64,000 nucleotides of DNA from Macrostomum hystrix (Eukaryota; Animalia; Platyhelminthes), in the NCBI GenBank assembly GCA_950097015.1, contig CATNEN010000037.1:1736001-1800000 (forward strand), in the 5' to 3' direction. A program made the position numbers and the translations under genes. Below the pieces are notes generated by a model. That model had not been told where the DNA came from and ran no database searches. It saw nothing but the letters and a program-made list of their open reading frames with translations. Below are positions 4,286 to 47,944 of the stretch, in pieces; the first letter of the stretch is position 1; every line of letters begins with the position of its first letter.

Positions 4286-6229
4286 ATGAGCAGCGAAGCA
4301 GCAGAGCAGCCTCCGACAATCTTCGACGCCGCTCTAACCAACTCGAAACGCGGCGTCGCTTTCGCCTTGGACACCTCAGGTAGCATGCACGCCAAGCTGG
4401 AGCCGGTGATCGATGAACTGGCGGAGGCCCTTAGTGGGCTACGACGAACCGGCCGAAAATTCCGTCTGATCCGCTTCGGTGCCGGTCTGGCCCAGAGCTG
4501 GCCGGGAAAGCGCGATGAGCAGGGGAAAAGTTGGAAGCTGAATGCGGATGCGGATGCGGATGCGGATGCGGATGCGGTATGTACCTGGCTACGTCGATGT
4601 GGCTGTCGTGGCGACTCGCGTGGTGCCCGTTCGGCTCTGCTGGCAGCCATCTCGGCCACCGGCTGCGACGCCGCCTGCCTGGTGACAGATGGCCTGCCGG
4701 ATTGGGCTCGACACGCCGACCTCAATGCTCTCGTGGCAGATGCGAGTCAATCAAGAAGACGCGTCCATTGCGTGTGCCCGGAGCTGTCTGGTGCGCCAGT
4801 GCAGTCGGGCCTGACGGACTTTCTGAACCGCCTGGCAGCCGCTACAGCCGGCTCCTTGACCATTGTCCGCATCGGTTTGAGCAGCGTCGGTGGCAACAGC
4901 CTGAACCGTGTTGGCCCGGCACTGCGGGTGTCGCACGCCTGGTCGGCAGTTTCTGATGATCATAGTCAGCAAGGAAGCAGACGGTATCCAGTCACTGCAG
5001 CACTAACCGGCGATCCGTTGATCAATGCCAAACCGTGGATCAAATTTCTGCCTTGCCGTCGATCACCGCCACGTCCGACATCGCCACCGCAGCAGCGATC
5101 GGAGGAGGCACAGTCGGTCGCTGCGGACACCCTGCTGGGCCGGCGGGTCCTCGCCAGGCGCCAATCGGGCGGCCAGCTGTTTGAGGGAATCGTGCGCGAC
5201 AGGCGAGGCTGCTATCGGGTTTGTTGAATCAGTTGAATCAGCTGTTCTAGCGGTTCCCTAGCGGTTCTAGTTTAATCATTAGCATTTATTAATTAGCTTA
5301 CTTTTATCTTTTTTTCTGTATCTCAAAAAGTAATCAACCAATCGCCATGAAAATCCGGAACACGGGCTAAATTTTTCCTCTCTTTCCGATGAAACAAATT
5401 CCCGAATCACAAAACATCGGCATCGTCGAGATATCCAACGATTTATACTAAGTAATGTTTGTTGTCCTTGTCACCAGGGATGAATCGACAAGAATTGATG
5501 CTGACTCGGACGTCTTTGAAAGTTATTTAATCGCAATGGGTGGAAGCATTTGGTTCTCATGGTGGACTTTCACGAAAATCGGTTATTCGGTTTGGGACCT
5601 ATCGTGAAGTCCGCAGTGGACCGTATTTGAAATTTCTACTTTTAAGCCATTGAGCAAGACACTGATTCCTCATTGCTTTAGTTCACTCGTACACAGTTGC
5701 GGCTAGGTCACTGGCTCTACACCTATACACCCTGCTAGGTGTAACGTCAATTCTATCGTTTTTCATTCGCAAGTATTATTTTCAGACCACGGGCACTCCA
5801 ATCTACCGGGTGGAGTTCGGTCCGTTTGAGGCCCGGGGTTTCGCAGTGCACGATTATCGCTCGGTGCCTCTCTTCGACATCATCAGCCTCGACGACGCCC
5901 TGCAGCGAAGTATCCGACCCGGCGATCGCGTGCTTTCAAAGGCCCCTGCGGCACCAGTGACGAGATCGTCAGCTTCAAAACTGATAACAAAGACTGCCAA
6001 GAGTAGTCCATACTTGACGGCCAGGGTCCTGCGCGGAGTCGACGATGGGCACTCGGTGACAAAGTTAGTTGTCGCGTTTGACGACGTTGAAGCCACTGGA
6101 GGGGTTGGTACCGCTGTTGTGTCCTCGGATAAAGTGGTCCGCATCGATGACCGACTGCATCATCAGCTGGGGCTGGAGGCTGCCTACAGGTGCACTCGAT
6201 GCCCGGCTTCAGCAGCCGCGTCAATGTAG
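4286..6229 (+). CDS. VWA-domain + DUF4537/Tudor-like protein (VWA3B/C11orf16-like); exons 4286-5218, 5786-6229
   Basis: MIDAS-type DTSGSM and VTDGLPD motifs, followed by GRRVLARR..G..FEGIV and FDIISLDDAL..I.PGDRVL, which resemble DUF4537. Phase 0 intron CGG|GTTTGT ... TTTTCAG|ACC. The 3' end is uncertain (possible donor at 6190). Confidence 0.75.
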
Positions 6230-6406
6230 AACACTGCAACCAAGCTTTTTGCGAGCCCTGCGAGCCCTGTTTTAGCTTGAAACATTTTATCAAAGGCTTC
6301 TGGCGGTCGAACATTTTTCTAAGAGTATTATTTATTCGTGGTTTCATTTCCGAGCAACACCTTGTATAGTGAGAATATTATAATTCGATTTATTTAAATC
6401 CTTAGA

Positions 6407-8740
6407 TCTGGTCTGCGGAATCTAGAGAGCCTCAGTGAATCTGGTGTGAGGAATCTAGAGAACCTCAGTGAATCTGGTGTGAGGAATCTAGAGAGCCTCA
6501 GTGAATCTGGTGTGAGGAATCTAGAGAGCCTCAGTGAATCTGGTGTGAGGAATCTAGAGAACCTCAGTGAATCTGGTGTGAGGAATCTAGAGAGCCTCAG
6601 TGAATCTGGTGTGAGGAATCTAGAGAACCTCAGTGAATCTGGTGTGAGGAATCTAGAGAGCCTCAGTGAATCTGGTGTGAGGAATCTAGAGAACCTCAGT
6701 GAATCTGGTGTGAGGAATCTAGAGAGCCTCAGTGAATCTGGTGTGAGGAATTTAGAGAACCTCAGTGAATCTGGTGTGAGGAATCTAGAGAACCTCGGTG
6801 AATCTGGTGTGAGGAATCTAGAGAGCCTCAGTGAATCTGGTGTGAGGAATTTAGAGAACCTCAGTGAATCTGGTGTGAGGAATCTAGAGAGCCTCGGTGA
6901 ATCTGGTGTGAGGAATCTAGAGAACCTCAGTGAATCTGGTGTGAGTTATCTAGAGAACCTCAGTGAATCTGGTGTGAGGAATCTAGAGAACCTCAGTGAA
7001 TCTGGTGTGAGTTATCTAGAGAACCTCAGTGAATCTGGTGTGAGGAATCTAGAGAACCTCAGTGAATCTGGTGTGAGTTATCTAGAGAACCTCAGTGAAT
7101 CTGGTGTGAGGAATCTAGAAAACCTCAGTGAATCTGGTGTGAGGAATCTAGAGAACCTCAGTGAATCTGGTGTGAGGAATCTAGAGAGCCTCAGTGAATC
7201 TGGTGTGAGGAATCTAGAGAACCTCAGTGAATCTGGTGTGAGGAATCTAGAGAACCTCAGTGAATCTGGTGTGAGGAATCTAGAGAACCTCAGTGAATCT
7301 GGTGTGAGGAATCTAGAGAGCCTCAGTGAATCTGGTGTGAGGAATCTAGAGAGCCTCAGTGAATCTGGTGTGAGGAATCTAGAGAGCCTCAGTGAATCTG
7401 GTGTGAGGAATCTAGAGAGCCTCAGTGAATCTGGTGTGAGGAATCTAGAGAGCCTCAGTGAATCTGGTGTGAGGAATCTAGAGAGCCTCAGTGAATCTGG
7501 TGTGAGGAATCTAGAGAGCCTCAGTGAATCTGGTGTGAGGAATCTAGAGAACCTCAGTGAATCTGGTGTGAGGAATCTAGAGAGCCTCAGTGAATCTGGT
7601 GTGAGGAATCTAGAGAACCTCAGTGAATCTGGTGTGAGTTATCTAGAGAACCTCAGTGAATCTGGTGTGAGGAATCTAGAGAACCTCAGTGAATCTGGTG
7701 TGAGGAATCTAGAGAACCTCAGTGAATCTGGTGTGAGGAATCTAGAGAGCCTCAGTGAATCTGGTGTGAGGAATTTAGAGAAACTCAGTGAATCTGGTGT
7801 GAGGAATCTAGAGAGCCTCAGTGAATCTGGTGTGAGGAATCTAGAGAACCTCAGTGAATCTGGTGTGAGGAATCTAGAGAGCCTCAGTGAATCTGGTGTG
7901 AGGAATCTAGAGAGCCTCAGTGAATCTGGTGTGAGGAATCTAGAGAGCCTCAGTGAATCTGGTGTGAGGAATCTAGAGAGCCTCAGTGAATCTGGTGTGA
8001 GGAATCTAGAGAGCCTCAGTGAATCTGGTGTGAGGAATCTAGAGAGCCTCAGTGAATCTGGTGTGAGGAATCTAGAGAGCCTCAGTGAATCTGGTGTGAG
8101 GAATCTAGAGAGCCTCAGTGAATCTGGTGTGAGGAATCTAGAGAACCTCAGTGAATCTGGTGTGAGGAATCTAGAGAGCCTCAGTGAATCTGGTGTGAGG
8201 AATTTAGAGAACCTCAGTGAATCTGGTGTGAGGAATCTAGAGAACCTCAGTGAATCTGGTGTGAGGAATCTAGAGAACCTCAGTGAATCTGGTGTGAGGA
8301 ATCTAGAGAGCCTCGGTGAATCTGGTGTGAGGAATCTAGAGAACCTCAGTGAATCTGGTGTGAGGAATCTAGAGAACCTCGGTGAATCTGGTGTGAGGAA
8401 TCTAGAGAACCTCAGTGAATCTGGTGTGAGTTATCTAGAGAACCTCAGTGAATCTGGTGTGAGGAATCTAGAGAACCTCAGTGAATCTGGTGTGAGTTAT
8501 CTAGAGAACCTCAGTGAATCTTGTGTGAGGAATCTAGAGAACCTCAGTGAATCTGGTGTGAGTTATCTAGAGAACCTCAGTGAATCTGGTGTGAGGAATC
8601 TAGAGAACCTCAGTGAATCTGGTGTGAGGAATCTAGAGAACCTCAGTGAATCTGGTGTGAGGAATCCAGAGAGCCTCGGTGAATCTGGTGTGAGGAATCT
8701 AGAGAACCTCAGTGAATCTGGTGTGAGGAATCTAGAGAAC
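6407..8740 (+). repeat. 33-bp tandem array (AGGAATCTAGAGAACCTCAGTGAATCTGGTGTG), ~70 copies
   Basis: Directly visible. The unit is a multiple of 3 and stop-free, which produces the 805-aa RNLENLSESGV ORF. Confidence 0.97.
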
Positions 8741-9691
8741 CAGATGGAATACCTTGAGGTGTGTATTTTAAAGCAATCGTCCCAGAATCGACTTTTTCGT
8801 CCAAATCTGCACAATCAAACTACCTTGCTAGTCTTTCATACAGGTGTTAGTTATAGTATCTAGTTGCTTTCAGCCAGGCTGGTGTGAGCAAATATTTGAC
8901 GTGCACATATCATCCTTCAATATGGTTGGTGTCGCCTGTTATTATCGAAGCTACAGTTGAAACATGTTTTTCGTACTAGTCACGATCATAGAATGTTAAG
9001 GCAATTGTTGCTATTGATTTTTATAATTTGGTGTGATGAGCAATTGGGACTCCCCAAATACTTTGTTCCCCAAACTTGCTGATCCCGAAACTACCATATC
9101 ATAAACGCTTGGATGTGACTCTGAAATCCTAAAGTAGCATGACTTCATGAATCACAAGGACCCCTGAGTCCCAATCCCCTTATGTCATTGAAAAACGAAA
9201 AAGTACATCTGTTGAGTGAAGTCCTACATGGTTTTGTCCTTGCTGGACTTCATAAATATACATTTTTTCATATAACATTGAAACAATAAACAAATGTAAA
9301 TTGAATTTAAAATTGCTAAGCTAAAGATTCTCAGAAAAAATGTTTATGATGTAATATTCGATTTATCTGCACTCACAGTAGTATAGCATGCATATAACCA
9401 ATCACCATGAAATTCATATGGAGTCGAGGGTGTTACAATTTCGTAAGTATTCGTAAGTAGTCACATAGCCAGTGGTGACTGCTGGAACTGAGTGAGTGAG
9501 CTACAATGATATGCTTTAGATAAATCCACTATAAACATTTAAATCTTGCTAATCTAAACTGTACTAAACTCAAAACTATTGCTAGTCAGAAACTAAGCCC
9601 CGCAATAATTGCTAGTGCTGTTCTAAAACAATTAATTTTTATTTAGAAGGACTACTCACTGCAAAACCATTATTTTTGGGGTCTACAGGGC

Positions 9692-12887: not shown

Positions 12888-14729
12888 TCCCCTGATCCTT
12901 CAGTGAATGTCCTGATCCTTCAGTGAGTCCCTGACCCTTCAGTGTATGTCCTGATCCTTCCGTGAGTCCCATGATCCTTCAGTGAGTCCCTGATCCTTCA
13001 GTGAGTCCCCTGATCCTTCAGTGAGTCCCTGATCCTTCAGTGAATGTCCTGATCCTACAGTGAGTCCCCTGATCCTTCAGTGAATGTCCTGATCCTTCAG
13101 TGAGTCCCCTGATCCTTCAGTGAGTCCCTGATCCTTCAGTGAATGTCCTGATCCTTCAGTGAGTCCCCTGATCCTTCAGTGAATGCCCTGATCCTTCAGT
13201 GAGTCCCTGATCCTTCAGTGAGTCCCCTGATCCTTCAGTGAGTCCCCTGATCCTTCAGTGAGTCCCTGATCCTTCAGTGAGTCCCCTGATCCTTCAGTGA
13301 GTCCCTGATCCTTCTGTGAGTCCCCTAATCCTTCAGTGAATGTCCTGATCCTTCAGTGAGTCCCCTGATCCTTCAGTGAGTCCCCTGATCCTTCAGTGAG
13401 TCCCTGATCCTTCAGTGAGTCCCTGATCCTTCAGTGAGTCCCCTGATCCTTCAGTGAATGTCCTGATCCTTCAGTGAGTCCCTGATCCTTCAGTGAGTCC
13501 CCTGATCCTTCAGTGAGTCCCCTGATCCTTCAGTGAATGTCCTGATCCTTCAGTGAATGTCCTGATCCTTCAGTGAGTCCCCTGATCCTTCAGTGAGTCC
13601 CCTGATCCTTCAGTGAGTCCCTGATCCTTCAGTGAGTCCCTGATCCTTCAGTGAGTCCCCTGATCCTTCAGTGAGTCCCCTGATCCTTCAGTGAATGTCC
13701 TGATCCTTCAGTGAATGTCCTGATCCTTCAGTGAATGTCCTGATCCTTCAGTGAGTCCCCTGATCCTTCAGTGAGTCCCCTGATCCTTCAGTGAGTCCCT
13801 GATCCTTCAGTGAGTCCCTGATCCTTCAGTGAGTCCCCTGATCCTTCTGTGAATGTCCTGATCCTTCAGTGAGTCCCTGATCCTTCAGTGAGTCCCCTGA
13901 TCCTTCAGTGAGTCCCCTGATCCTTCAGTGAGTCCCTGATCCTTCAGTGAGTCCCTGATCCTTCAGTGAGTCCCCTGATCCTTCAGTGAATGTCCTGATC
14001 CTTCAGTGAATGTCCTGATCCTTCAGTGAGTCCCTGATCCTTCAGTGAATGTCCTGATCCTTCAGTGAGTCCCTGATCCTTCAGTGAGTCCCTAATCCTT
14101 CAGTGAGTCCCCTGATCCTTCAGTGAGTCCCCTGATCCTTCAGTGAGTCCCTGATCCTTCAGTGAGTCCCTGATCCTTCAGTGAGTCCCCTGATCCTTCA
14201 GTGAGTCCCTGATCCTTCAGTGAGTCCCCTGATCCTTCAGTGAGTCCCCTGATCCTTCAGTGAGTCCCTGATCCTTCAGTGAGTCCCTGATCCTTCAGTG
14301 AATGTCCTGATCCTTCCGTGAATGTCCTGATCCTTCAGTGAATTTCCTGATCCTTCTGTGAGTCCCATGATCCTTCAGTGAGTCTCCTGATCATTCAGTG
14401 AGTCCCCTGATCCTTCAGTGAGTCCCTGATCCTTCAGTGAGTCCCCTAATCCTTCAGTGAATGTCCTGATCCTTCAGTGAATGTCCTGATCCTTCAGTGA
14501 GTCCCTGATCCTTCAGTGAGTCCCCTGATCCTTCAGTGAGTCCCCTGATCCTTCAGTGAGTCCCTGATCCTTCAGTGAGTCCCTGATCCTTCTGTGAGTC
14601 CCCTAATCCTTCAGTGAATGTCCTGATCCTTCAGTGAATGTCCTGATCCTTCAGTGAGTCCCTGATCCTTCAGTGAGTCCCTGATCCTTCAGTGAGTCCT
14701 TGATCCTTCAGTGAGTCGCCTGATCCTTA
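12888..14729 (+). repeat. 19-20-bp tandem array (GTCCCCTGATCCTTCAGTGA with GAATGTCC variants), ~90 copies
   Basis: Directly visible. Confidence 0.97.
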
Positions 14730-15632: not shown

Positions 15633-17860
15633 ATGCGCATCGAGCAGCTCTGGCGCCGCTATCCCCTGCTGCGTCTGCTGCTCCTGCTGACGTCTCTGCT
15701 CTGGCTGACCCTCGTGGCCGTTCTGCTGAGTCTTCACACCGACTCTCATGCCTACGACGACTTTGGACACTTCAGTGATCAAGCTCTGGCCGAGAAGGCG
15801 CGTCTCAGCGCCGAGTTTTGGCGCAGCGACCGAGGACAACGGTTGAAACGCTTGCGCGAAAGTCAGGACCGTCTGCGCAGCATTTTGATGAAGGAGGAGG
15901 CCGCAGCTGCTGCCGCAGGCGCCGAAAACAGCAGCTCAATAACTGATACGCCAACTGTAACTGTAGAGTCAACAACGACTTCGTCTTCTTCAGCCGAGAC
16001 GAACGCAACAAGAAGCGGCGGTCCGGGTGACCTCGGCGCCCCGGTCTGGGTGGACCCTGGCCAGCTGAGCGAAGAGCAGCGCGACGCCTTCCAGGCCGGC
16101 TGGCGAGACAGCGGCTTCAACGAGTTTGCCAGCGATCTAGTCGGCGCTCGGCGTCGTCTACAAGACTTTCGACCGCTGGCCTGTACAGCCCGCAGCCCGG
16201 CAGAACTGCCAAACACCAGTGTCATCATCTGCATGCACAACGAGGCCTGGTCAGCGCTGCTGCGCACTTTGCACTCTGTGATTGACAGGTCACCGCCGAG
16301 CCTGCTGCATGAGGTCATCATCGTTGACGACGCGTCGACCAGGCCGCAGCTGGGTCGGCCCCTCGACGACTATCTTGCTCAGCTGGTCCGCTTGTCAAGC
16401 CAGAGGACTCGGCTGCGGCTGATTAGAAATCCTCGGCGCGAAGGACTTGTCCGGTCAGTTGTGGCCCTTTGAATGATATTTCGCGAGCTTGGCGAAAGAG
16501 GACGCAGGATTGGAGGCAATAATCAATGACGCAATTTTGCAGGTCTCGCCTGATTGGCGCCGCGGCAGCCACCAGCCAGACGCTCACCTTTCTTGACTCG
16601 CACATCGAGTGCGCGGTAGGCTGGCTGGAGCCGCTGCTGGACCGGGTGGGCCGCAACCGGCGCACGGTGGCCGTGCCCTACATCGATGTGATCAGCAGCG
16701 AGACGATGGCCTTCCTACACGTGTCTCCCGAGCGCATGACCATCGGCGGTTTCGCTTGGCCCGGCCTGGCCTTCGCCTGGCGTGCCGTGCCGGAGCGCAT
16801 CCGGCGGAACCTGAGCAGCCGCGCCGATCCTGTGCCCAGCGCCACCATGCCCGGAGGTCTGTTCACCATAGACAGGGGCTTTTTCCAGGAGATAGGCAGC
16901 TACGACCCGGGCATGGAGATCTGGGGCAGCGAGAACCTCGAGCTCAGCTTCCGAGTGTGGATGTGCAGCGAGGGCCGAATCGAGGTCGTGCCCTGCTCCA
17001 TCGTTGGTCACCTGTTCCGCTCAGCCAGTCCCTACGCCTGGGGCAAGACTGGCGCAGCCGAAGTGCTGAAGCGCAACGTTGTCCGACTGGCCGAAGTGTG
17101 GCTGGACGGCTTCAAGCACATCTTGTACCGTCAGTTTAACTATAAGCTTGGCAATATTGGTGACATTTCCCAGAGACGCGAGCTCCGTCGCAGGCTCGGC
17201 TGCCGCTCCTTCCGCTGGTACTTGGAGAATGTGTGCCCGGAGCAGCTGAGTCCGCGGTGGTGGCGGCTGGCCGCCGACAACTCCACAGCAGTTCGCATGG
17301 GTCCGCTGAGCACCGCGGCCGAAATCGCCGGCCACATCTGGTGCCTCGACGCCGTGTTCAGCTCAGTTGACGTCGACGAGGAGTCGGCGTCACCGATTGC
17401 GCGCGAGTGTCACGGCGAGGGAGGCGGTCAGACATGGGTGGTTGCCGAGGCTGGCATCGCTGCCGAAGAAGCTGGAAGCACAGTCAGTGGCAGCCCGCTA
17501 ATGCTGGCGCGGTCGGACGGCCGCTGTTTGCACTACAATGGCAAAGACCTGTCGCTGGCGCCCTGCCAGAACGGTCAGGAGAGCGGCGAAGGCGGTCTGG
17601 CTAGTCTGCAGACGTGGCTCTACCAGCCGGCCAGTCGGCGCCTAGTCCATTCGGCCAGCAGACGCTGCCTCGCCGTTCTTCGCTCGGCCGTTGTACCAGT
17701 TGCACGGCTCAGCGTTGCCAGTTGTGGCGGCGGCGAGGGCCACGGCGAGAGTCATGAAGGCGACGGCGTGGGTGAGCCCGGCACGGCTTGGATCCTGCCG
17801 CAGCTGCTTGACTTGACAGACGACCGGCCGATTGAGCTCGGGGAGACTGTGACCAAATAA
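15633..17860 (+). CDS. GALNT: Polypeptide N-acetylgalactosaminyltransferase (exons 15633-16453, 16543-17860)
   Basis: N-terminal type II TM helix; motifs SVIICMHNEAWSALLRT, IIVDDAS, REGLVR|SRLIGA, FLDSHIEC, MPGGLFTIDR and WGSENLELSFRVW; C-terminal ricin-like region (WCLDA, QTW, RCL). One 89-bp intron CG|GTCAGT ... TTTTGCAG|G. Symbol is family level only. Confidence 0.95.
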
Positions 17861-17896
17861 TTTCCCAAGCGGTTTTTCTGGTGCCCATGTGTTCTA

Positions 17897-18521
17897 AATC
17901 CAGTCTCTGATCCCAGAATCCAGTCTCTGATCCCAGAATCCAGTCTCTGATCCCAGAATCCAATCTCTGATCCCAGAATCCAGTCTCTGATCCCAGAATC
18001 CAATCTCTGATCCCAGAATCCAGTCTCTGATCCCAGAATCCAGTCTCTGATCCCAGAATCCAATCTCTGATCCCAGAATCCAGTCTCTAATCCAAGAATC
18101 CAGTCTTTGATCCCAGAATCCAGTCACTGATCCCAGAATCCAGTCACTGATCCCAGAATCCAGTCTCTGATCCAAGAATCCAGTCACTGATCACAGAATC
18201 CAGTCTCTGATCCAAGAATCCAGTCTCTGATCCCAGAATCCAGTCTCTGATCCCAGAATCCAGTCACTGATCCCAGAATCCAGTCTCTGATCCCAGAATC
18301 CAGTCTCTGATCCCAGAATCCAGTCACTGATCCCAGAATCCAGTCTCTGATCCCAGAATCCAGTCACTGATCCCAGAATCCAGTCTCTGATCCCAGAATC
18401 CAGTCTCTGATCCCAGAATCCAGTCACTGATCCCAGAATCCAGTCTCTGATCCCAGAATCCAGTCTCTGATCCCAGAATCCAGTCACTGATCACAGAATC
18501 CAGTCTCTCATCTAAGAATCC
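17897..18521 (+). repeat. 20-bp tandem array (AATCCAGTCTCTGATCCCAG), ~31 copies, starting ~35 bp after the GALNT stop
   Basis: Directly visible; shares the core AGTC.CTGATCC with the 12.9 kb family. Confidence 0.95.
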
Positions 18522-18739
18522 TTTGACTATGATGTTTCTCTTCATATCAGAAGAATTGATTATTCTGATATCTTCTGAATAATTTCAAACTAATTGTTTA
18601 ACTTCGCTTCCACTTTAATTTTTCTTTGCTATAAGATAGCACTTCGGAACTTCGAAGTTCAGATAATTTTTTCATATATTTCATATATATATATATTTCA
18701 TATATATTTCAAATATATATATTTCATATATATATGAAA

Positions 18740-18928
18740 TCCTTCAGTGAGTCCCCTGATCCTTCAGTGAGTCCCTGATCCTTCAGTGAGTCCCTGATCC
18801 TTCAGTGAGTCCCCTGATCCTTCAGTGAGTCCCCTGATCCTTCAGTGAGTCCCTGATCCTTCAGTGAGTCCCCTGATCCTTCAGTGAGTCCCTGATCCTT
18901 CAGTGAGTCCCTGATCCTTCAGTGAGTC
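18740..18928 (+). repeat. Short copy of the 19-20-bp GTCCCCTGATCCTTCAGTGA array, ~10 units
   Basis: Units identical to those of 12888-14729; follows an AT-rich (TA)-like tract at 18670-18738. Confidence 0.95.
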
Positions 18929-19444
18929 TATATTTTATCTACTAGCTCGTACTTTCACTATAGCCAAATGAGTAGTGTGTATAGATATTTTGGCTATAAT
19001 TTCAAGAATTTAAATAAAAATGGTATGCAGCACTACAATCTTTTTCCATGAATAAATTGTTTTCGTAACTTAATTCAGCGCAACTTGCTCTGGATTCCGG
19101 TAAACAAATTCCTCAACTTTCAAACAGTGTGAAACAAGCGTACTGTAACTGTACGAGTACATTGCGGTGCCTTGCCGGTTAACTGAGAGTCACAATTGAG
19201 CTTAAATTACCATCTCTGTGTTTCTAGTACAGATTGTTTTAGTTGGGTAATTTACTAGACGATATGTATCGAAAAGTTAAAATTTAGCGATGAAAAAATT
19301 AAATTAAATTTATCCTGTCTATATTTTTTCTGGAATGATAAACAATTGTAATATTTAGATAAAACAGCTAACGGTGATTGGGCAAGCAAAATTCAGAAGG
19401 AATACTTCATTTGAAGGTCAAATAATTTATCAATTCTATTCCAC

Positions 19445-21184
19445 TCAGGCTTCGGCCTCGGCCGCCTCCACTACAGCCACCTCGAAAGGGGCAATGGTCG
19501 TCCCGGCCTCCACCGTCTCGGCCACTGCACTATGCGACTTCGTCCAGCGTCGGTGCAGCCGATTGGCGAAGCAGCAGCAGGCGATGTCAATCAGGACGCT
19601 GACAGCTGCCGAGCAGCGGACTGCAAGGCCCTCGGTCGGAGCCAGCAGCCGGAGGCTGTCAGTTGGAAGGCCGCCGGCCAGCAGCACAAGGCGAAGATCC
19701 GACAGGCCAGTTGAAGAAGGCGACGCTGAGCCCGCAGCGGTCAGCGCGCAAGCAGTCGAGGAGGCCGCCACCGCAAGGAGTCGGCGAATGTCGCCAACAA
19801 GCTGATAGTCAGGCAGGTCGCGCTGGCCGACGAAGATGGCGCAGCTGATCAGCCTGGAGGCGCCGGCTGCGGCGCTCAGCGAAGCCGCCAGAGGCAGCAG
19901 GAAGTCGATGACCAGCCCGGATGACGACGGCGGTGACGAAGCGCCAAGAGCGCGGCAGCAGCGCCGGCTGGCGCCCATCGCAGCCGCGCCGGATCCGGCG
20001 GCGAAGGCGACGCCAGCTGCAGGCAGCGCCTCGGCCAGGCAGCGGATCGGGCTGGGACGGCCGCCGGCTGCCAGCAGCATCGGCGGCAGCGGCATCGCCA
20101 GGCCGAGCAGCAGCAGCCAGGCAGCCAGGAGGCCGAGGCAGAGCGCAAGGCCGGGCACCGCGGCCACAACTTCGGCCAGCGGAGGTGGCGGCGGCGCCTC
20201 CAGGACTGCCTGAGCGGCCAGACTGGCGAAGGCCAACGGCACCAGTCGGCGCAGGCAGCGGTGAGCGCGAGCGATGCCGATTCGCAGGGAGCGCGCCAAG
20301 CCTGTGAGAAAGTCAGCAGCTTCGGGTTCATTGTCTGCGCCTCGACGTCGTAAAAGAGCGACGCCGACGACGATTATAAACAGCAGGCCGAGCAAGTTCG
20401 GACCGGGAGCCGAGAAAACGGCGCTGTCGCTCGACGCCCCGAGGCCGCTGCTGCTCGTTCCATCGGTCTCGTTTAGTGACGACAGCCGCCATGGCCGCAG
20501 ATGCAACGGTCGCTTTCGAAGGACTGCCTCGGCCAGACTGTCAGGGAATAGGATGCCGCCCACGGCATCCAGGAGAGTCACCATCGCTGCTAAGAAGTCT
20601 CCGCTTGAGAAATTCCCGGCGCCTCCACCGACATTGCCTCTGTCGCCGACTCCCAGCTGACCGGGTTGAAGCCACAGCATCAGCGACATCATGCCACCAG
20701 TAGCCAGCAACCAGGCCGCCATTTGCATAGCAACCGTTGTCAGGATCAGCGCCGCCAAGTTCCTCATCCGCAGGCCAACGAGAGCGGCTGTGGCTGCCAG
20801 GGCCGCCTGCGGCAGGACGGCGCAGCGCAGCAGGTCCACCCAAACCCGGCCGGGCCAGCCGACAGTCCAGGCCAGCGGGCCGGCGTTGACAACGTCAGTG
20901 AAGCCGCGGAGACGACGCAGTGCGAAGCCGACTAGCAGGCCGATTAGCGCGCCCGCCGGACCAGCCAGCAGCGACGGCAGAGGTGTCAGGGGCGACCGTC
21001 GCCTTCGATGTCCGTTACAGCGGCCCGACTCCACTTCTGCAGTGTCCGCTGGCAATCGTCGTCTGCGAATCATGAATTCAGGTTTACTGCCTAATAATAA
21101 GCGCAGAAATAGCTGTGAAAGTCTGGTGCCCGTTTCATATAGCACCGCGCCTTGCCGACTATCTGAATTGCTAATTCGCGCCAT
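19445..21184 (-). CDS. Intronless, highly divergent SLC1 (EAAT / dicarboxylate-amino acid:cation symporter) family protein, up to 579 aa
   Basis: Family-like segments: LIGLLVGFALR, WPGRVWVDLLRCAVLP, LLDAVGGILFPDSLAEA, PNLLGLLFII, PLAFASLAAQAV, FLLPLAA, AIFVGQ, GLPTD and a terminal D-x-x-C. The start could instead be the ATG at 21073. Confidence 0.85.
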   Translation of the reverse strand: MARISNSDSRQGAVLYETGTRLSQLFLRLLLGSKPEFMIRRRRLPADTAEVESGRCNGHRRRRSPLTPLPSLLAGPAGALIGLLVGFALRRLRGFTDVVNAGPLAWTVGWPGRVWVDLLRCAVLPQAALAATAALVGLRMRNLAALILTTVAMQMAAWLLATGGMMSLMLWLQPGQLGVGDRGNVGGGAGNFSSGDFLAAMVTLLDAVGGILFPDSLAEAVLRKRPLHLRPWRLSSLNETDGTSSSGLGASSDSAVFSAPGPNLLGLLFIIVVGVALLRRRGADNEPEAADFLTGLARSLRIGIARAHRCLRRLVPLAFASLAAQAVLEAPPPPPLAEVVAAVPGLALCLGLLAAWLLLLGLAMPLPPMLLAAGGRPSPIRCLAEALPAAGVAFAAGSGAAAMGASRRCCRALGASSPPSSSGLVIDFLLPLAASLSAAAGASRLISCAIFVGQRDLPDYQLVGDIRRLLAVAASSTACALTAAGSASPSSTGLSDLRLVLLAGGLPTDSLRLLAPTEGLAVRCSAAVSVLIDIACCCFANRLHRRWTKSHSAVAETVEAGTTIAPFEVAVVEAAEAEA

Positions 21185-21190
21185 GTAGTT

Positions 21191-21202
21191 GTTGCTAGCA
21201 AC
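21191..21202. promoter_or_regulatory. Candidate RFX X-box (palindrome GTTGCTAGCAAC) upstream of the SLC1-like gene
   Basis: Perfect 12-bp palindrome built from two GTTGCT/AGCAAC half-sites, 7 bp upstream of the first ATG and ~120 bp upstream of the second. Confidence 0.45.
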
Positions 21203-21744
21203 GGAAGTCCAGAGTAGGTGGTGCTATTTCTTTCAAAGAATCAATTGCAGTATAAATTTCTTCTATGAGTTTAGACAAACGAGCTTACTAAAATATAAAG
21301 AACTCCCGATTGGGTCTAAAAATGCACGCTTGTTTTGGACATAGTGGAGAGATAGCGCACGCACAGTGTCTATGGCGTTGCTGCATGACAATGCCGTGCT
21401 TCTATCACACTGACGAATGGTTTAAACACTCAGCATAATCGATAATCGATGGGTGGCTTGGACCATAGACAGGGGTGTTATTGAACGCTGACTGAGTTTT
21501 GAGAGGGAAGAGAGGGAGAGAGGAATAAGTATAAGTTAATTTCCGCTTATTTATTTCTTTGGTCTGAATTAATGGCAGAGGACTCGTGTCCGAGGCCGTT
21601 AGTTCAGACCATAGACTAAATAAACGGAAATAATATACTCGTATTTATACCCCGTTCGGAATGTTGGCTGCTAGCGGGGATGAGGGGGCGAAGCCCCCTA
21701 TCGTTTTTCGTGCGTCTAAAAGATCTAACGATATTTGGATCGTT

Positions 21745-22362
21745 TATTTGGCTCAGGCCAAACAAACAGCTTTAACATTGGACCATAGATTTATTTGGCT
21801 CAGGCCAAACAAACAGCTTTAACATTGGACCATAGATTTATTTGGCTCAGGCCAAACAAACAGCTTTAACATTGGACCATAGATTTATTTGGCTCAGGCC
21901 AAACAAACAGCTTTAACATTGGACCATAGATTTATTTGGCTCAGGCCAAACAAACAGCTTTAACATTGGACCATAGATTTATTTGGCTCAGGCCAAACAA
22001 ACAGCTTTAACATTGGACCATAGATTTATTTGGCTCAGGCCAAACAAACAGCTTTAACATTGGACCATAGATTTATTTGGCTCAGGCCAAACAAACAGCT
22101 TTAACATTGGACCATAGATTTATTTGGCTCAGGCCAAACAAACAGCTTTAACATTGGACCATAGATTTATTTGGCTCAGGCCAAACAAACAGCTTTAACA
22201 TTGGACCATAGATTTATTTGGCTCAGGCCAAACAAACAGCTTTAACATTGGACCATAGATTTATTTGGCTCAGGCCAAATAAACTGCTTTAACATTGGAC
22301 CATAGATTTATTTGGCTCAGGCCAAACAAACAGCTTTAACATTGGACCATAGATTTATTTGG
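21745..22362 (+). repeat. 47-bp tandem array (GACCATAGATTTATTTGGCTCAGGCCAAACAAACAGCTTTAACATTG), ~13 nearly identical copies
   Basis: Directly visible; no spacers. Confidence 0.97.
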
Positions 22363-23420: not shown

Positions 23421-26400
23421 TTAATTGATTTGATTTTCGAAGCAGGATCCGAACGTAGAATCGCAGCAGGATCCATACATAGAATCGCAACAGGATCCAT
23501 ATGTAGAATCGCAGCAGGATCCATACATAGAATCGCAGCAGGATCCATATGTAGAATCGCAGCAGGATCCGTACATAGAATCGCAGCAGGATCCATATGT
23601 AGAATAGCAGCAGGATCCATAAGTAGAATCGCAGCAGGATCCATACGTAGAATCGCAGCAGGATCCATAAGTAGAATCGCAGCAGGATCCATACGTAGAA
23701 TCGCAGCAGGATCCATACGTAGAATCGCAGCAGGATCCATATGTAAAACCGCAGCAGGATCCATAAGTAGAACCGCAGCAGGATCCATATGTAGAATCGC
23801 AGCAGGATCCGTACATAGAATCGCAGCAGGATCCATATGTAGAATAGCAGCAGGATCCATAAGTAGAATCGCAGCAGGATCCATACGTAGAATCGCAGCA
23901 GGATCCATAAGTAGAATCGCAGCAGGATCCATATGTAGAATCGCAGCAGGATCCGTACATAGAATCGCAGCAGGATCCATATGTAGAATCGCAGCAGGAT
24001 CCATAAGTAGAACCGCAGCAGGATTCATAAGTAGAACCGCAGCAGGATCCATACATAGAATCGCAACAGGATCCATATGTAGAATAGCAGCAGAATCCGT
24101 ACATAGAATAACAGCAGGATCCGAGCGTAGAATCGCAGCAGGATCCATAAGTAGAATCGCAGCAGGATCCATACGTAAAATCGCAGCAGGATCCATAAGT
24201 AGAATCGCAGCAGGATCCATACATAGAATCGCAGCAGGATCCATAAGTAGAATCGCAGCAGGATCCATAAGTAGAATCGCAGCAGGATCCATAAGTAGAA
24301 TCGCAGCAGGATCCATATGTAGAACCGCAGCAGGATCCATAAGTAGAATCGCAGCAGGATCCATAAGTAGAATCGCAGCATGATCCGTAAGTAGAATCGC
24401 AGCAGGATCCATAAGTAGAATCGCAGCAGGATCCATAAGTAGAATCGCAGCAGGATCCATAAGTAGAATCGCAGCAGGATCCATAAGTAGAATCGCAGCA
24501 GGATCCATAAGTAGAATCGCAGCAGGATCCATAAGTAGAACCGCAGCAGGATCCATAAGTAGAATCGCAGCAGGATCCATAAGTAGAATCGCAGCATGAT
24601 CCGTAAGTAGAATCGCAACAGGATCCATAAGTAGAATCGCAACAGGATCCATAAGTAGAACCGCAGCAGGATCCATAAGTAGAATCGCAGCAGAATCCAT
24701 AAGTAGAATCGCAGCAGGATCCATAAGTAGAATCGCAGCAGGATCCATAAGTAGAATCGCAACAGGATCCATAAGTAGAACCGCAGCAGGATCCATAAGT
24801 AGAATCGCAACAGGATCCATAAGTAGAACCGCAGCAGGATCCATAAGTAGAATCGCAGCAGGATCCATAAGTAGAACCGCAGCAGGATCCATATGTAGAA
24901 CCGCAGCAGGATCCATATGTAGAACCGCAGCAGGATCCATAAGTGGAATCGCAACAGGATCCATAAGTAGAATCGCAGCAGGATCCATAAGTAGAATCGC
25001 AGCAGGATCCATATGTAAAACCGCAGCAGGATCCATAAGTAGAACCGCAGCAGGATCCATATGTAGAATCGCAGCAGGATCCGTACATAGAATCGCAGCA
25101 GGATCCATATGTAGAATCGCAGCAGGATCCATAAGTAGAACCGCAGCAGGATTCATAAGTAGAACCGCAGCAGGATCCATACATAGAATCGCAACAGGAT
25201 CCATATGTAGAATAGCAGCAGAATCCGTACATAGAATAACAGCAGGATCCGAACGTAGAATCGCAGCAGGATCCATAAGTAGAATCGCAGCAGGATCCAT
25301 ACGTAAAATCGCAGCAGGATCCATAAGTAGAATCGCAGCAGGATCCATACATAGAATCGCAGCAGGATCCATAAGTAGAATCGCAGCAGGATCCATAAGT
25401 AGAATCGCAGCAGGATCCATAAGTAGAATCGCAGCAGGATCCATATGTAGAACCGCAGCAGGATCCATAAGTAGAATCGCAGCATGATCCGTAAGTAGAA
25501 TCGCAGCAGGATCCATAAGTAGAATCGCAGCAGGATCCATAAGTAGAACCGCAGCAGGATCCATAAGTAGAATCGCAGCAGGATCCATAAGTAGAATCGC
25601 AGCATGATCCGTAAGTAGAATCGCAACAGGATCCATAAGTAGAATCGCAACAGGATCCATAAGTAGAACCGCAGCAGGATCCATAAGTAGAATCGCAGCA
25701 GAATCCATAAGTAGAATCGCAGCAGGATCCATAAGTAGAATCGCAGCAGGATCCATAAGTAGAATCGCAACAGGATCCATAAGTAGAACCGCAGCAGGAT
25801 CCATAAGTAGAATCGCAACAGGATCCATAAGTAGAACCGCAGCAGGATCCATAAGTAGAACCGCAACAGGATCCATAAGTAGAACCGCAGCAGGATCCAT
25901 ATGTAGAACCGCAGCAGGATCCATATGTAGAACCGCAGCAGGATCCATATGTAGAACCGCAGCAGGATCCATATGTAGAACCGCAGCAGGATCCATATGT
26001 AGAACCGCAGCAGGATCCATATGTAGAACCGCAGCAGGATCCATATGTAGAACCGCAGCAGGATCCATAAGTAGAACCGCAGCAGGATCCATAAGTAGAA
26101 TCGCAGCAGGATCCATAAGTAGAATCGCAGCATGATCCGTAAGTAGAATCGCAGCAGGATCCATAAGTAGAATCGCAGCAGGATCCATAAGTAGAATCGC
26201 AGCAGGATCCATAAGTAGAATCGCAGCAGGATCCATAAGTAGAATCGCAGCAGGATCCATAAGTAGAATCGCAGCAGGATCCATAAGTAGAACCGCAGCA
26301 GGATCCATAAGTAGAATCGCAGCAGGATCCATAAGTAGAATCGCAGCATGATCCGTAAGTAGAATCGCAACAGGATCCATAAGTAGAATCGCAACAGGAT

Positions 26401-27554
26401 CCATAAGTAGAACCGCAGCAGGATCCATAAGTAGAATCGCAGCAGAATCCATAAGTAGAATCGCAGCAGGATCCATAAGTAGAATCGCAGCAGGATCCAT
26501 AAGTAGAATCGCAACAGGATCCATAAGTAGAACCGCAGCAGGATCCATAAGTAGAATCGCAACAGGATCCATAAGTAGAACCGCAGCAGGATCCATAAGT
26601 AGAACCGCAACAGGATCCATAAGTAGAACCGCAGCAGGATCCATATGTAGAACCGCAGCAGGATCCATATGTAGAACCGCAGCAGGATCCATATGTAGAA
26701 CCGCAGCAGGATCCATATGTAGAACCGCAGCAGGATCCATATGTAGAACCGCAGCAGGATCCATATGTAGAACCGCAGCAGGATCCATATGTAGAAACCG
26801 CAGCAGGATCCATAAGTAGAACCGCAGCAGGATCCATAAGTAGAACCGCAGCAGGATCCATATGTAGAACCGCAGCAGGATCCATAAGTAGAATCGCAGC
26901 AGGATCCATAAGTAGAACCGCAGCAGGATCCATATGTAGAACCGCAGCAGGATCCATAAGTAGAATCGCAGCAGGATCCATAAGTAGAATCGCAGCAGGA
27001 TCCATATGTAGAACCGCAGCAGGATCCATAAGTAGAACCGCAGCAGGATCCATAAGTAGAACCGCAGCAGGATCCATATGTAGAACCGCAGCAGGATCCA
27101 TAAGTGGAATCGCAGCAGGATCCATATGTAGAACCGCAGCAGGATCCATAAGTAGAACCGCAGCAGGATCCATAAGTAGAACCGCAGCAGGATCCATATG
27201 TAGAACCGCAGCAGGATCCATAAGTAGAATCGCAGCAGGATCCATAAGTAGAACCGCAGCAGGATCCATATGTAGAACCGCAGCAGGATCCATAAGTAGA
27301 ATCGCAGCAGGATCCATAAGTAGAATCGCAGCAGGATCCATATGTAGAACCGCAGCAGGATCCATAAGTAGAACCGCAGCAGGATCCATAAGTAGAACCG
27401 CAGCAGGATCCATATGTAGAACCGCAGCAGGATCCATAAGTGGAATCGCAGCAGGATCCATATGTAGAACCGCAGCAGGATCCATAAGTAGAACCGCAGC
27501 AGGATCCATATGTAGAACCGCAGCAGGATCCATATGTAGAACCGCAGCAGGATC
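23421..27554 (-). CDS. Putative terminal exon encoding a Cys/Tyr-rich octapeptide repeat (TYGSCC[D/G]S)n; one frameshift near 26797
   Basis: Acceptor ATAATTTTCACTAG| at the array edge, in phase 1 with this frame. About half of the variant types are synonymous in this frame and CC is invariant. Stop TAA at 23421-23423. No upstream exon identified. Confidence 0.35.
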   Translation of the reverse strand, partial: DPAAVLHMDPAAVLHMDPAAVLLMDPAAVLHMDPAAIPLMDPAAVLHMDPAAVLLMDPAAVLLMDPAAVLHMDPAAILLMDPAAILLMDPAAVLHMDPAAVLLMDPAAILLMDPAAVLHMDPAAVLLMDPAAVLLMDPAAVLHMDPAAIPLMDPAAVLHMDPAAVLLMDPAAVLLMDPAAVLHMDPAAILLMDPAAILLMDPAAVLHMDPAAVLLMDPAAILLMDPAAVLHMDPAAVLLMDPAAVLLMDPAAVSTYGSCCGSTYGSCCGSTYGSCCGSTYGSCCGSTYGSCCGSTYGSCCGSTYGSCCGSTYGSCCGSTYGSCCGSTYGSCCDSTYGSCCGSTYGSCCDSTYGSCCDSTYGSCCDSTYGFCCDSTYGSCCGSTYGSCCDSTYGSCCDSTYGSCCDSTYGSCCDSTYGSCCGSTYGSCCDSTYGSCCDSTYGSCCDSTYGSCCDSTYGSCCDSTYGSCCDSTYGSCCDSTYGSCCDSTYGSCCGSTYGSCCGSTYGSCCGSTYGSCCGSTYGSCCGSTYGSCCGSTYGSCCGSTYGSCCGSTYGSCCGSTYGSCCGSTYGSCCGSTYGSCCDSTYGSCCGSTYGSCCDSTYGSCCDSTYGSCCDSTYGFCCDSTYGSCCGSTYGSCCDSTYGSCCDSTYGSCCDSTYGSCCDSTYGSCCGSTYGSCCDSTYGSCCDSTYGSCCDSTYGSCCGSTYGSCCDSTYGSCCDSTYGSCCDSTYGSCCDSMYGSCCDSTYGSCCDFTYGSCCDSTYGSCCDSTFGSCCYSMYGFCCYSTYGSCCDSMYGSCCGSTYESCCGSTYGSCCDSTYGSCCDSMYGSCCDSTYGSCCGSTYGSCCGFTYGSCCDSTYGSCCDSTYGSCCDSTYGSCCGSTYGSCCGSTYGSCCGSTYGSCCDSTYGSCCGSTYGSCCDSTYGSCCGSTYGSCCDSTYGSCCDSTYGSCCDSTYGFCCDSTYGSCCGSTYGSCCDSTYGSCCDSTYGSCCDSTYGSCCDSTYGSCCGSTYGSCCDSTYGSCCDSTYGSCCDSTYGSCCDSTYGSCCDSTYGSCCDSTYGSCCDSTYGSCCDSTYGSCCGSTYGSCCDSTYGSCCDSTYGSCCDSTYGSCCDSMYGSCCDSTYGSCCDFTYGSCCDSTYGSCCDSTLGSCCYSMYGFCCYSTYGSCCDSMYGSCCGSTYESCCGSTYGSCCDSTYGSCCDSMYGSCCDSTYGSCCDSTYGSCCDSTYGSCCDSTYGSCCYSTYGSCCDSMYGSCCDSTYGSCCGSTYGSCCGFTYGSCCDSTYGSCCDSTYGSCCDSTYGSCCDSTYGSCCDSTYGSCCYSTYGSCCDSMYGSCCDSTYGSCCDSMYGSCCDSTYGSCCDSMYGSCCDSTFGSCFENQIN

Positions 27555-27555
27555 C
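23441..27555. repeat. 24-bp tandem array (GTAGAATCGCAGCAGGATCCATAA), ~171 copies with higher-order duplications
   Basis: Directly visible; a single 1-bp insertion near 26797. Confidence 0.97.
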
Positions 27556-32435: not shown

Positions 32436-32504
32436 CTAAACCCATGAAATAGGCAGCTGATCAGTTGCAACAGCTTGCTGCTCATGCTGCTGCTGCTGCT
32501 GCTC

Positions 32505-32585
<81 letters not shown>

Positions 32586-32586
32586 A

Positions 32587-32644
<58 letters not shown>

Positions 32645-34079
32645 TTTGTCGCTGCTGCTGCTGCTGTTGCTGCTGTAGTTGCTGCTGTTGCTGCTGTAGT
32701 TGCTGCTGTTGCTGCTGCAGTAGCGGCCTCTCCTCGACGTTTTCCACAGTCGCTCCGTTGATTCCTTCCTCTCCCGCCTCTTCTCCTGCCGCCGTCGCCG
32801 CCGACAGTCCACGAGCCGACCGACGAAGGCGTCGACGCTGGGCCGAAGTGCGTCGAGACGCCAGCGGAACAGTAGAACTGAAAGCATCAATCGGGCCTTC
32901 TGCTGCTCTGCGAGCGTCCGCGCCACCGTCGCCAGCTCTGCCACCGCCGCCTGCGACGCCTTGGCTAACGCCGCCCCCGAAGCTGATCCTGTGGTTGCGA
33001 AGTCGGCGGGTGCAGAGAAGCCTCGCCAGCTCGCGCCGGAACAGAGTACCCGTGGCCAGGTAGACAAAAAACTTTAAAGCATTGTGACTGACTGCCAGGC
33101 CGCTCACTATGTGATTAGCGGCCAGGTGAGCGAAATAGGTGCGCAGCTGGGGCAGGCGGCCGTCGTCTATTTGTTGGCGCACCTGAGCGTCCGTCAGGTT
33201 GCAGGTGAGTCCCTCCAGGTCGGTTCCAACCAGGCTGATGCTGGCAAACAGCAGCGCCGTCACGGGCAGCATCGCGCCGATCTGGTAGAAGGAGACGCTT
33301 AACAGCGTCACGGTGGCGGCCGTCGGTTGGCGCCGTTGCATCGGCCTGTCCGACGAGGTCGTCAATTCGGAAACAACGGCTGCTCCGCCGGCTCCGCTGG
33401 CAGCTGAGCGTCTCACCTGGGCCAGCACCAGCAGGTTGAAAGCCAAGATGGTCAATGGTGCTACGGCGAAGAACAGCACCTCGGTGATCTTTGTCCAGAC
33501 ACTGTAGAAGCGGTGCTGCGCGGTGCCGCCCTCCAGAATGCGCTCGTCCTCGGTGCAGATGCCTCTGACAGCGTCGTAGCGATAGAATCGCAGCTGCATC
33601 AGCGCCACCAGCAGACAGCCCGCGGTCAGGCAGGCGGTGGCGGCGAGAGCGCGGCGCACGGTGCAGAGCCGGTGGCTGCTGAAAGGATGGCAGATGCCGA
33701 TGTAGCGCTCAACTGTGAAGGCCAGAATTAGCGCCGGAGACAGATACTGCATGCACATGCTGTAGACTGGGAATGTCCAGCAAACTGGTCGATTGTCAAG
33801 CACCTGGACATTGTAGTATTCGCGCAGGTGCCAGGGCAGCTGCTGCATCAGCAGGAATAGTGCGTCCAGTACCGCCAGGGCGCACAGGTAGATGCTGGAG
33901 CTGCTGAGCATTCGCCGACTGCTCCACACGGCCAGGCTGAGCAGGCTGCCGGGCAAGCCGACGGCCAGCCAGACTGGGATCAGCGAGCGGACCAGGTGCA
34001 CGCTGTAGGGCACGAAGGCCAGGCTTAGACTGAGACTGCTGCCGTGCCGGCTTAACAGGCCCATGCAGCTGTCGTTCAT
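32436..34079 (-). CDS. Intronless rhodopsin-class (A) neuropeptide-receptor-like GPCR with C-terminal polyQ, 547 aa
   Basis: Seven hydrophobic segments; GLPGSLLS (TM1), SSSIYLCALAVLD (TM2), FTVERYIGICHPF (ERY), FAVAPLTILAFN (TM5) and ALKFFVYLATGTLFRREL (TM7/helix 8). The pattern is typical of the invertebrate FMRFamide/myosuppressin-like receptor group. Confidence 0.93.
32465..32722 (-). repeat. Coding (CAG/CAA)n polyglutamine tract with HE, L and RQK interruptions
   Basis: About 85 codons, in frame with the GPCR before its stop. Confidence 0.9.
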
Positions 34080-47000: not shown

Positions 47001-47395
47001 CACAGTGTCCCATCACACATGTGTCCTATCACACAGTGTCCTATCACACAGTGTCCCATCACACAGTGTCCTATCACACAGTGTCCTATCACACAGTGTC
47101 CTATCACACAGTATCCTATCACACAGTGTCTTATCACACAGTGTCCTATCACACAGTGTCCTATCACACAGTGGCCAATCACACAGTGGCCCATCACACA
47201 GTGTCCTATCACACAGTGTCCTATCACACAGTGTCCTATCACACAGTGTCCTATCACACAGTGTCTTATCACACAGTGTCCTATCACACAGTGTCCTATC
47301 ACACAGTGACCTATCACACAGTGTCCTATCACACAGTGTCCTATCACACAGTGTCCCATCACACATGTCTCCTATCACACAGTGTCCTATCACAG
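44030..47395 (+). repeat. 15-bp tandem array (CACACAGTGTCCCAT/CCTAT), ~220 copies, with 16-bp variants
   Basis: Directly visible; frame-shifting variants argue against coding. Confidence 0.97.
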
Positions 47396-47944
47396 ACTAT
47401 CGTACCACACAGAATATAAGGTACTTCGCGGAATGCAGTCTAGCCAAATCGTTAAAGAACTTACTCAGTTCGAAATCGTGTTTCTTAGAGACCATAACTT
47501 ATTGTTGCTGTTGATCTGTAAAATTTGAATTGGAGTGAATGCTATTTAAAATAGCAACTGAATTCTGAATACAAATTTAAGCAATGCAGGGGTTAAAACT
47601 GTTTTACATTGCGAGTTTTCGCAGAAATTAATCGCGCAAACTGCTGATTGGATGACAGGTTCTGAACCAATGAGCCAAGAGGAGACTAGTATTTTGCCTT
47701 AAGGAATTAGAGGTAGCGTTCATCAGATCCGTTATGGTATTTTTATTCAATATTATTGCTCGGTATCATTGTACCAGAAAAACAACCCGGCACTTTGCCA
47801 TCAGCAGCAGAAGCCTCTCAATCATGCACTTATCACCCGTGGCCCGAGGGCAAATCCTAAAGAAGATATGAGGCATGGGTCCACCGTCCTAATTATTTTG
47901 CCCCTTTTCTCATTCCATGTAGATCAACATTATCAAGCTTGCCT

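Follow-up and report, generated by a model that had tools for sequence, protein, structure and literature searches.

An SLC1-family gene of Macrostomum hystrix with an intact reading frame and replaced substrate- and sodium-binding motifs

What becomes of an SLC1 transporter when the residues that bind its substrate and its cations are replaced? The question is raised by an open reading frame (ORF) on the minus strand of a 64,000-nucleotide stretch of DNA from the flatworm Macrostomum hystrix (here called the window; GenBank assembly GCA_950097015.1, contig CATNEN010000037.1, positions 1,736,001 to 1,800,000). The residue roles in question are established in GltPh and the EAATs. They concern the serines of re-entrant hairpin 1 (HP1), the NMDGT motif of transmembrane segment 7 (TM7), which serves Na1, Na3 and the substrate, the Asp, Arg, Thr and Asn of TM8 (D394, R397, T398 and N401 in the GltPh substrate site) and the TM3 pair of the Na3 site. 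The HP1, TM7 and TM8 motifs are conserved in the SLC1 family from archaea to humans. A first-pass annotation had described the product of the M. hystrix ORF as an SLC1-fold "pseudo-transporter" that has lost all canonical substrate- and Na+-binding motifs, and had suggested an anion channel, a regulatory trimer subunit or a carrier with a new substrate. The locus is a real, intact single-exon gene descended from an animal EAAT/ASCT (SLC1) transporter by extremely fast evolution. Its product is referred to here as the SLC1 protein.

The reading frame occupies exactly the positions 19445-21184 that had been assigned to it. It runs from ATG to TGA over 579 codons with no internal stop, and in-frame stops are located immediately upstream. 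The ORF is not a chance occurrence, because a stop-free run of 579 codons has a probability of 3e-6 at the ORF's own base composition, none of 2000 shuffles of the ORF attained this length (the maximum was 466 codons), and the longest runs in the remaining five frames over the ORF do not exceed 171 codons. The ORF forms a sharply bounded GC-rich island with 60-76% GC, compared with 35-45% in the flanks. The same contrast with the flanks, and a similar GC content by codon position, are displayed by the genes otherwise recognisable in the window, namely those of a ppGalNAc-transferase, a rhodopsin-type G-protein-coupled receptor and an ASC/DEG-ENaC channel. In the ORF itself the GC contents of first and third codon positions (GC1 and GC3) are close, 0.71 and 0.70. 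The first 37 codons are AT-rich and resemble the flank, and the GC-rich coding composition begins near Met38; thus the ATG at position 21073 may be the true start. The SLC1 domain is unaffected either way.

The translated sequence matches the Pfam family PF00375 (SDF, the sodium:dicarboxylate symporter family, SLC1) with an E-value of 1.6e-17 and 64 bits, where the gathering cut-off is 27.9 bits. The match spans positions 8-386 of the 387 profile positions in one stretch. Of the solved structures, human EAAT1 matches best (E-value = 1.9e-10), followed by EAAT3 and EAAT2, and a search of a language-model atlas returned SDF clusters only. The hydropathy profile follows that of the family with r = 0.57, compared with 0.79 for canonical members and 0 +/- 0.04 for shuffled sequences. 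An alignment of 31 sequences, consisting of the SLC1 protein and 30 homologues that are canonical animal SLC1s, was used for structure prediction with AlphaFold2. The predicted model has a mean local confidence score (pLDDT) of 70.8 and a predicted template-modelling score (pTM) of 0.71, and it displays the SLC1 fold, i.e. a scaffold and a transport domain with two re-entrant hairpins. Foldseek places ASCT2 and EAAT3 closest to this model built on canonical homologues, at target-normalised template-modelling scores of 0.84-0.86.

The SLC1 protein shares with the animal EAAT/ASCT proteins (SLC1A1-7) homology over the full-length domain and the same order of TM1-8, HP1 and HP2. It also retains the P-G after TM3, the F-x-L-P of TM7, AIFxxQ and GLPTD, and displays an N-x-T sequon in the TM4 loop. 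The closest members are the EAAT1, EAAT3 and ASCT2 structures, nematode GLT-4, Schmidtea slc1a-3 and fish ASCT1, with identities of only 20-26%.

The equivalence of the motifs was derived from pairwise HMMER alignments and from the 31-sequence alignment, which are concordant. The anchors are ungapped: the distance from P431 to A449 is 18 residues and that from G505 to D533 is 28 residues, both identical to the canonical spacing. The equivalence is thus independent of the choice of alignment. The sequence strings quoted in the first-pass annotation are all present, i.e. FAAGSGAAAM in HP1, AASLSAAAGASR in TM7 (aa positions 433-444), TEGLAVRCSAAVS in TM8 (starting at aa position 517), AIFVGQ, GLPTD and the last Asp of TM8, D533.

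At the tip of HP1 the canonical T-S-S-S-S-A-T-L-P reads A-G-S-G-A-A-A-M-G, so that the four serines are represented by GSGA, in which S398 is the only serine kept. In TM7 the canonical F-V-L-P-x-G-A-T-I-N-M-D-G-T-A-L-Y-E has become F-L-L-P-L-A-A-S-L-S-A-A-A-G-A-S-R-L. In TM8 the canonical D-W-L-L-D-R-F-R-T-M-V-N-V-L-G-D has become E-G-L-A-V-R-C-S-A-A-V-S-V-L-I-D. The D-R-x-R-T-x-x-N motif therein reads V-R-x-S-A-x-x-S, and the Asp that binds the α-amino group, the substrate Arg, the Thr and the Asn are lost (V522, S525, A526 and S529). Neither NMD nor D-x-x-R-T is found anywhere in the SLC1 protein; the canonical motifs are not retained at another site. Two residues of TM8 are kept: R523, which aligns with R477 of EAAT1, and D533, which corresponds to the Na1 aspartate D405 of GltPh and lies in an invariant column.

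The statement that all canonical motifs are lost is therefore correct for the replacement of HP1, TM7 and TM8 as motifs, and is too broad with respect to S398 and R523, which are kept. In other positions the loss extends further than had been noted. The T-T pair of the Na3 site in TM3 is replaced by A157-W158, the Y-E pair of TM7 that is linked with H+/K+ coupling by R444-L445, and the first Asp of TM8 by E518. HP2 carries a 3-residue insertion, and its invariant Pro column is occupied by Ser490. Unlike the EAAT/ASCT proteins, the SLC1 protein thus has replacements in the HP1 SSSS, NMDGT, TM8 D-x-x-R-T-x-x-N, TM3 T-T, TM7 Y-E and HP2 Pro positions together.

Ala, Gly or Ser now occupies nearly every position at which a polar side chain would bind the amino acid, the three Na+ or H+/K+. 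Among the side chains that coordinate the substrate, the Na1-3 ions, H+ and K+, the survivors are D533 and one HP1 serine. With only these two left, it is unlikely that the SLC1 protein couples amino-acid transport to Na+. On this point the earlier proposal is well supported.

A comparison of conserved positions shows which parts of the protein have been kept. Conserved columns were defined as those with at least 80% conservation among the 30 canonical animal SLC1s, and 88 columns qualify. The SLC1 protein keeps 47 of these, where 7.3 are expected from composition. The retention is uneven: 39 of 55 apolar or structural columns are kept, compared with 8 of 33 polar columns (Fisher p = 2.5e-5). 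The scaffold keeps 14 of 18 conserved columns and the transport domain 32 of 69 (p = 0.03), in agreement with the earlier observation that the trimerisation and scaffold segments remain. The family architecture is thereby kept in its full-length domain, its hydropathy pattern and most of the conserved Gly, Pro, Ala, Leu and Phe positions, with the scaffold above the transport core.

Approximately ten insertions and deletions peculiar to the SLC1 protein are found in the core. All are in frame, and most are located between modelled helices. Without selection on the frame, the probability of this outcome is about (1/3)^10. Because these indels are in frame and 47 of the 88 conserved columns are kept, we conclude from the counts, rather than from a ratio of nonsynonymous to synonymous substitution rates, that the lineage appears to have remained protein-coding through most of its divergence. 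The term pseudo-transporter assumes a functional gene, and it is half borne out by this evidence of historical selection on the reading frame.

Relatives of the SLC1 protein were sought exhaustively with HMMER, at a limit of E <= 0.001, among 1.84 billion sequences that represent about 15 billion proteins. Only 45 matches were obtained and all are SLC1 proteins. The best has an identity of 26% and an E-value of 5.9e-9, and those matches that carry a name are canonical EAAT/ASCT proteins; they belong to nematodes, Nematostella, fishes, Schmidtea, Mnemiopsis and a tardigrade. All 45 keep the TM7 sequence (N/T/H)-(M/L)-(D/N)-G where the region is present, and most keep R-T-x-x-N in TM8. Searches with a word index, using the whole protein and residues 60-290, gave no matches, probably because they were swamped by low-complexity words. 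An exact-sequence look-up found no match for the SLC1 protein and two neighbouring proteins; the assembly is outside that collection and the result is uninformative with respect to expression. In a maximum-likelihood tree the SLC1 protein groups with two GC-rich sequences, one green-algal and one metagenomic. An algal or metagenomic origin was considered from this position and rejected, the grouping being read as compositional or long-branch attraction. A literature search found nothing on "pseudotransporter", on the phylogeny of the SLC1 NMDGT motif, or specifically on Macrostomum glutamate transporters.

The SLC1 protein may best be regarded as a transport-dead, fold-preserving protomer under weak constraint, any activity of which would be uncoupled, through a leak or anion pathway, or exerted through assembly; we consider the chances of this reading to be about even. 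On the pattern of replaced and retained residues, ion-coupled amino-acid transport would no longer be performed. The protein would persist under a constraint acting at the level of the fold, and it may form a membrane trimer that is either homomeric or mixed with canonical protomers. Whatever activity remained would be uncoupled.

The further proposal, that the protein is a pseudo-transporter maintained by selection, appears unlikely. It would then provide a constitutive, substrate-independent anion or leak pathway, or act as a silent partner in EAAT trimers that tunes trafficking or the number of active sites. The residues of the uncoupled anion channel of EAAT/GltPh bear on the first of these, and on the anion channel, the one role suggested in the first-pass annotation to which the observations speak directly. 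R477 of EAAT1 is a determinant of anion selectivity (Cater et al. 2016, PMC4924932), and S103 in TM2 and Q445 in HP2 line the anion pathway (Chen et al., bioRxiv 10.1101/2020.05.25.115360). The suggestion gains from the selectivity Arg, kept as R523, and in the pairwise alignment with EAAT1 the residues of the extracellular gate, L88 and M89, are still hydrophobic as W115 and V116. It loses from the equivalent of Q445, which is not kept in the altered HP2 tip, and from S103, whose equivalent is Ala130. The EAAT conductance is activated by binding of Na+ and substrate, whereas the corresponding sites in the SLC1 protein are gone.

The replacement of S103 is one of several observations that weigh against a transport-dead protomer still under constraint, and most of the others are those expected of a relic. 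A relic would be an SLC1 paralogue that was protein-coding during the greater part of its history, is now free of selection, and is recently dead or dying and functionless, its frame remaining open since GC-rich sequence rarely makes stops and no frameshift has yet occurred. We regard this as a serious rival, though a less likely reading than the transport-dead protomer. No orthologue or close paralogue was found among the ~15 billion public proteins of the exhaustive search, where every match is a canonical transporter. The neighbouring ASC channel gene, used as a control on the same collection, matches Macrostomum lignano proteins with identities of 66-74%. Flatworm proteomes are thus represented there, and these matches also assign the window to a Macrostomum-type flatworm. 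The SLC1 gene is without an annotated orthologue even in M. lignano; either it belongs to a narrow lineage with very fast evolution, or the orthologue was missed by annotation. The terminal branch of the SLC1 protein in the maximum-likelihood tree is 7.1 substitutions per column, which is six times the median of 1.17.

Composition also weighs on this side. Gly, Ala, Arg and Pro together (GARP) make up 41% of the residues and Phe, Tyr, Met, Ile, Asn and Lys together (FYMINK) 10%, compared with family averages of 24% and 27%. In the neighbouring flatworm genes these shares are shifted as well (GARP 25-33%, FYMINK 11-24%), and none is as extreme. The residue bias, together with the near equality of GC1 and GC3, looks like composition-driven drift under relaxed constraint. 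Most of the functional residues that were lost gave way to Ala or Gly, whose codons are GC-rich, and GC pressure alone, acting on a weakly constrained protein, could therefore be the source of the replacements. The loss of all ligand sites at once agrees with a relic. The predicted structure is of limited weight here in that the AlphaFold2 model leans on the alignment of canonical homologues, and the prediction from the single sequence was uninformative (pLDDT 44).

Sequencing runs give a mixed picture. Four runs that share a study and an organism label contain 53-75% of the sampled 31-mers of positions 19300-21400, and two runs with other organism labels contain 17% and 6%. In the run index no run that contains 31-mers of the locus is recorded as RNA, which favours a relic. 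The four runs have about 43-48 million letters each, and so high a share of 31-mers in such small runs would be difficult to explain if a genome had been sampled at random.

Several properties of the locus speak against a relic. Zero stops and frameshifts have accumulated in 1740 nt, where the probability given above takes account of stops alone. The lineage-specific indels are in frame throughout, and 71% of the apolar conserved columns and 78% of the scaffold columns are kept. The GC content has not relaxed toward that of the flanks, and runs with other organism labels contain near-identical sequence. With a processed (retro)pseudogene the locus has in common that it is intronless, that it lies alone between minisatellites and that an orthologue was not detected. 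Unlike such a pseudogene, it has an intact ORF, and no poly(A) remnant (no A-tract beyond A6), target-site duplication or terminal repeats were found around it. The intronless state is not diagnostic of a retrocopy, because the ASC channel and G-protein-coupled receptor (GPCR) genes of the window are also single-exon.

It is quite improbable that the SLC1 protein works as a carrier whose substrate or coupling mode is new. In this case the elevator would be kept, and the pocket, emptied and lined with small residues, would bind a different solute, perhaps a larger or less polar one, independently of Na+. Arg444 in TM7, which replaces the Tyr beside the lost proton-acceptor Glu, may then stand in for a bound cation. 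The kept fold, hairpins and many structural positions are compatible with a carrier. The 45 relatives, with their retained TM7 and TM8 sequences, offer no precedent, the HP2 tip is altered by the insertion and by the loss of its invariant Pro, and no polar residue remains for substrate recognition.

An artefact, whether by misalignment (with the canonical motifs elsewhere), mis-assembly or an alien GC-rich segment that makes the ORF foreign, could draw on the strongly biased composition and the grouping in the tree, but it is very improbable and is largely refuted by the ungapped anchors that fix the motif positions on both sides. The lack of NMD and D-x-x-R-T strings in the protein, a GC content equal to that of neighbouring flatworm genes, best matches that are animal EAAT/ASCT proteins, and the presence of the locus in independent runs speak against it as well.

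The positions of the motifs discussed above and of other features of the window are collected in Table 1.

Table 1. Features of the SLC1 gene and of its surroundings, in window coordinates
Feature	Positions	Strand	Remarks
SLC1-family ORF	19445-21184	-	single exon, 579 aa counting stop; PF00375 match
Alternative start Met38 (MIRRRRLP)	21050-21073	-	candidate start; onset of GC-rich coding composition
TM2 segment LPQAALAATAA	20783-20815	-	conserved Pro kept; EAAT1 S103 equivalent (anion and water pathway) is Ala130
TM3 segment AMQMAAWLLA	20702-20731	-	Y-Y-x-x-T-T (Na3 site) replaced by M-Q-x-x-A-W
HP1 tip FAAGSGAAAM	19976-20005	-	aa 394-403; canonical (F/L)GTSSSSATL; only S398 kept
TM7 FLLPLAASLSAAAGASRL	19850-19903	-	F-x-L-P kept; NMDGT replaced by SAAAG (aa 437-441); Y-E replaced by R444-L445
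AIFVGQ, conserved TM7 end (AIFIAQ)	19823-19840	-	aa 449-454, kept
HP2 ALTAAGSASPSSTGL	19703-19747	-	3-residue insertion; tip G-I-P-x-A-G replaced by S-A-S-P-S-S-T-G
GLPTD before TM8	19658-19672	-	aa 505-509, kept
TM8 TEGLAVRCSAAVSVLID (canonical VDWLLDRFRTMVNVLGD)	19586-19636	-	R523 and D533 kept; ungapped G505-D533
ASC/DEG-ENaC channel gene	38820-40592	-	single exon, 590 aa, PF00858 E 4e-50
Rhodopsin-family GPCR	32436-34079	-	single exon, 547 aa, PF00001 E 5.6e-17
ppGalNAc-transferase gene (GT2 + Glyco_transf_7C + ricin B lectin)	15633-17860	+	two ORFs, GT..AG intron near 16455-16542
Long minisatellites	6406-8741, 12888-14728, 23437-27555, 44039-47412, 49567-52538 and others
GC-rich ORF	4286-5227	+	313 aa; weak VWA_3 match, E 0.0024, below cut-off
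GC-rich ORF	55021-56097	+	358 aa; no Pfam match

The best relatives of the ASC/DEG-ENaC channel gene in M. lignano include one that is named FMRFamide-activated. The 3′ part of the GPCR gene contains a TGC/CAG-type trinucleotide repeat at positions 32476-32718. Genes of the window can carry small introns, since the ppGalNAc-transferase gene displays a short GT..AG intron. The two GC-rich ORFs of 313 and 358 aa may be further single-exon genes. An Rfam scan of the window gave no matches.

The SLC1 ORF lies between two minisatellites at positions 17897-18521 and 18739-18928 and a third at 21743-22362. Long minisatellites of high regularity are unusually dense across the window as a whole; their units measure 13-47 nt and recur up to 224 times. 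Some of these form stop-free ORFs, e.g. at positions 23421-27533 (1370 aa) and 44041-47514 (1157 aa), which are probably repeat artefacts rather than genes. A 20-nt repeat at positions 17752-18487 on the minus strand is open in all three frames as peptide repeats of the DSGIRDWILGSETGFWDQRL type. It is an ORF-like satellite artefact, because 20 is not a multiple of three and the unit cycles through the frames.

Should the SLC1 gene be expressed and under selection, it would mean that the SLC1 scaffold is useful independently of coupled transport. The protein would then be a transporter counterpart of a pseudo-enzyme, in which the channel or scaffold functions of the SLC1 family are naturally separated from transport, and it would offer a natural tool for the study of uncoupled conductance or of heterotrimer assembly without transport. 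Should it be a dying paralogue, it would illustrate how GC-driven drift strips a protein of its polar functional residues while the ORF and the signature of the fold remain. It would in that case serve as a warning, as automatic annotation would name such a gene an "amino acid transporter".

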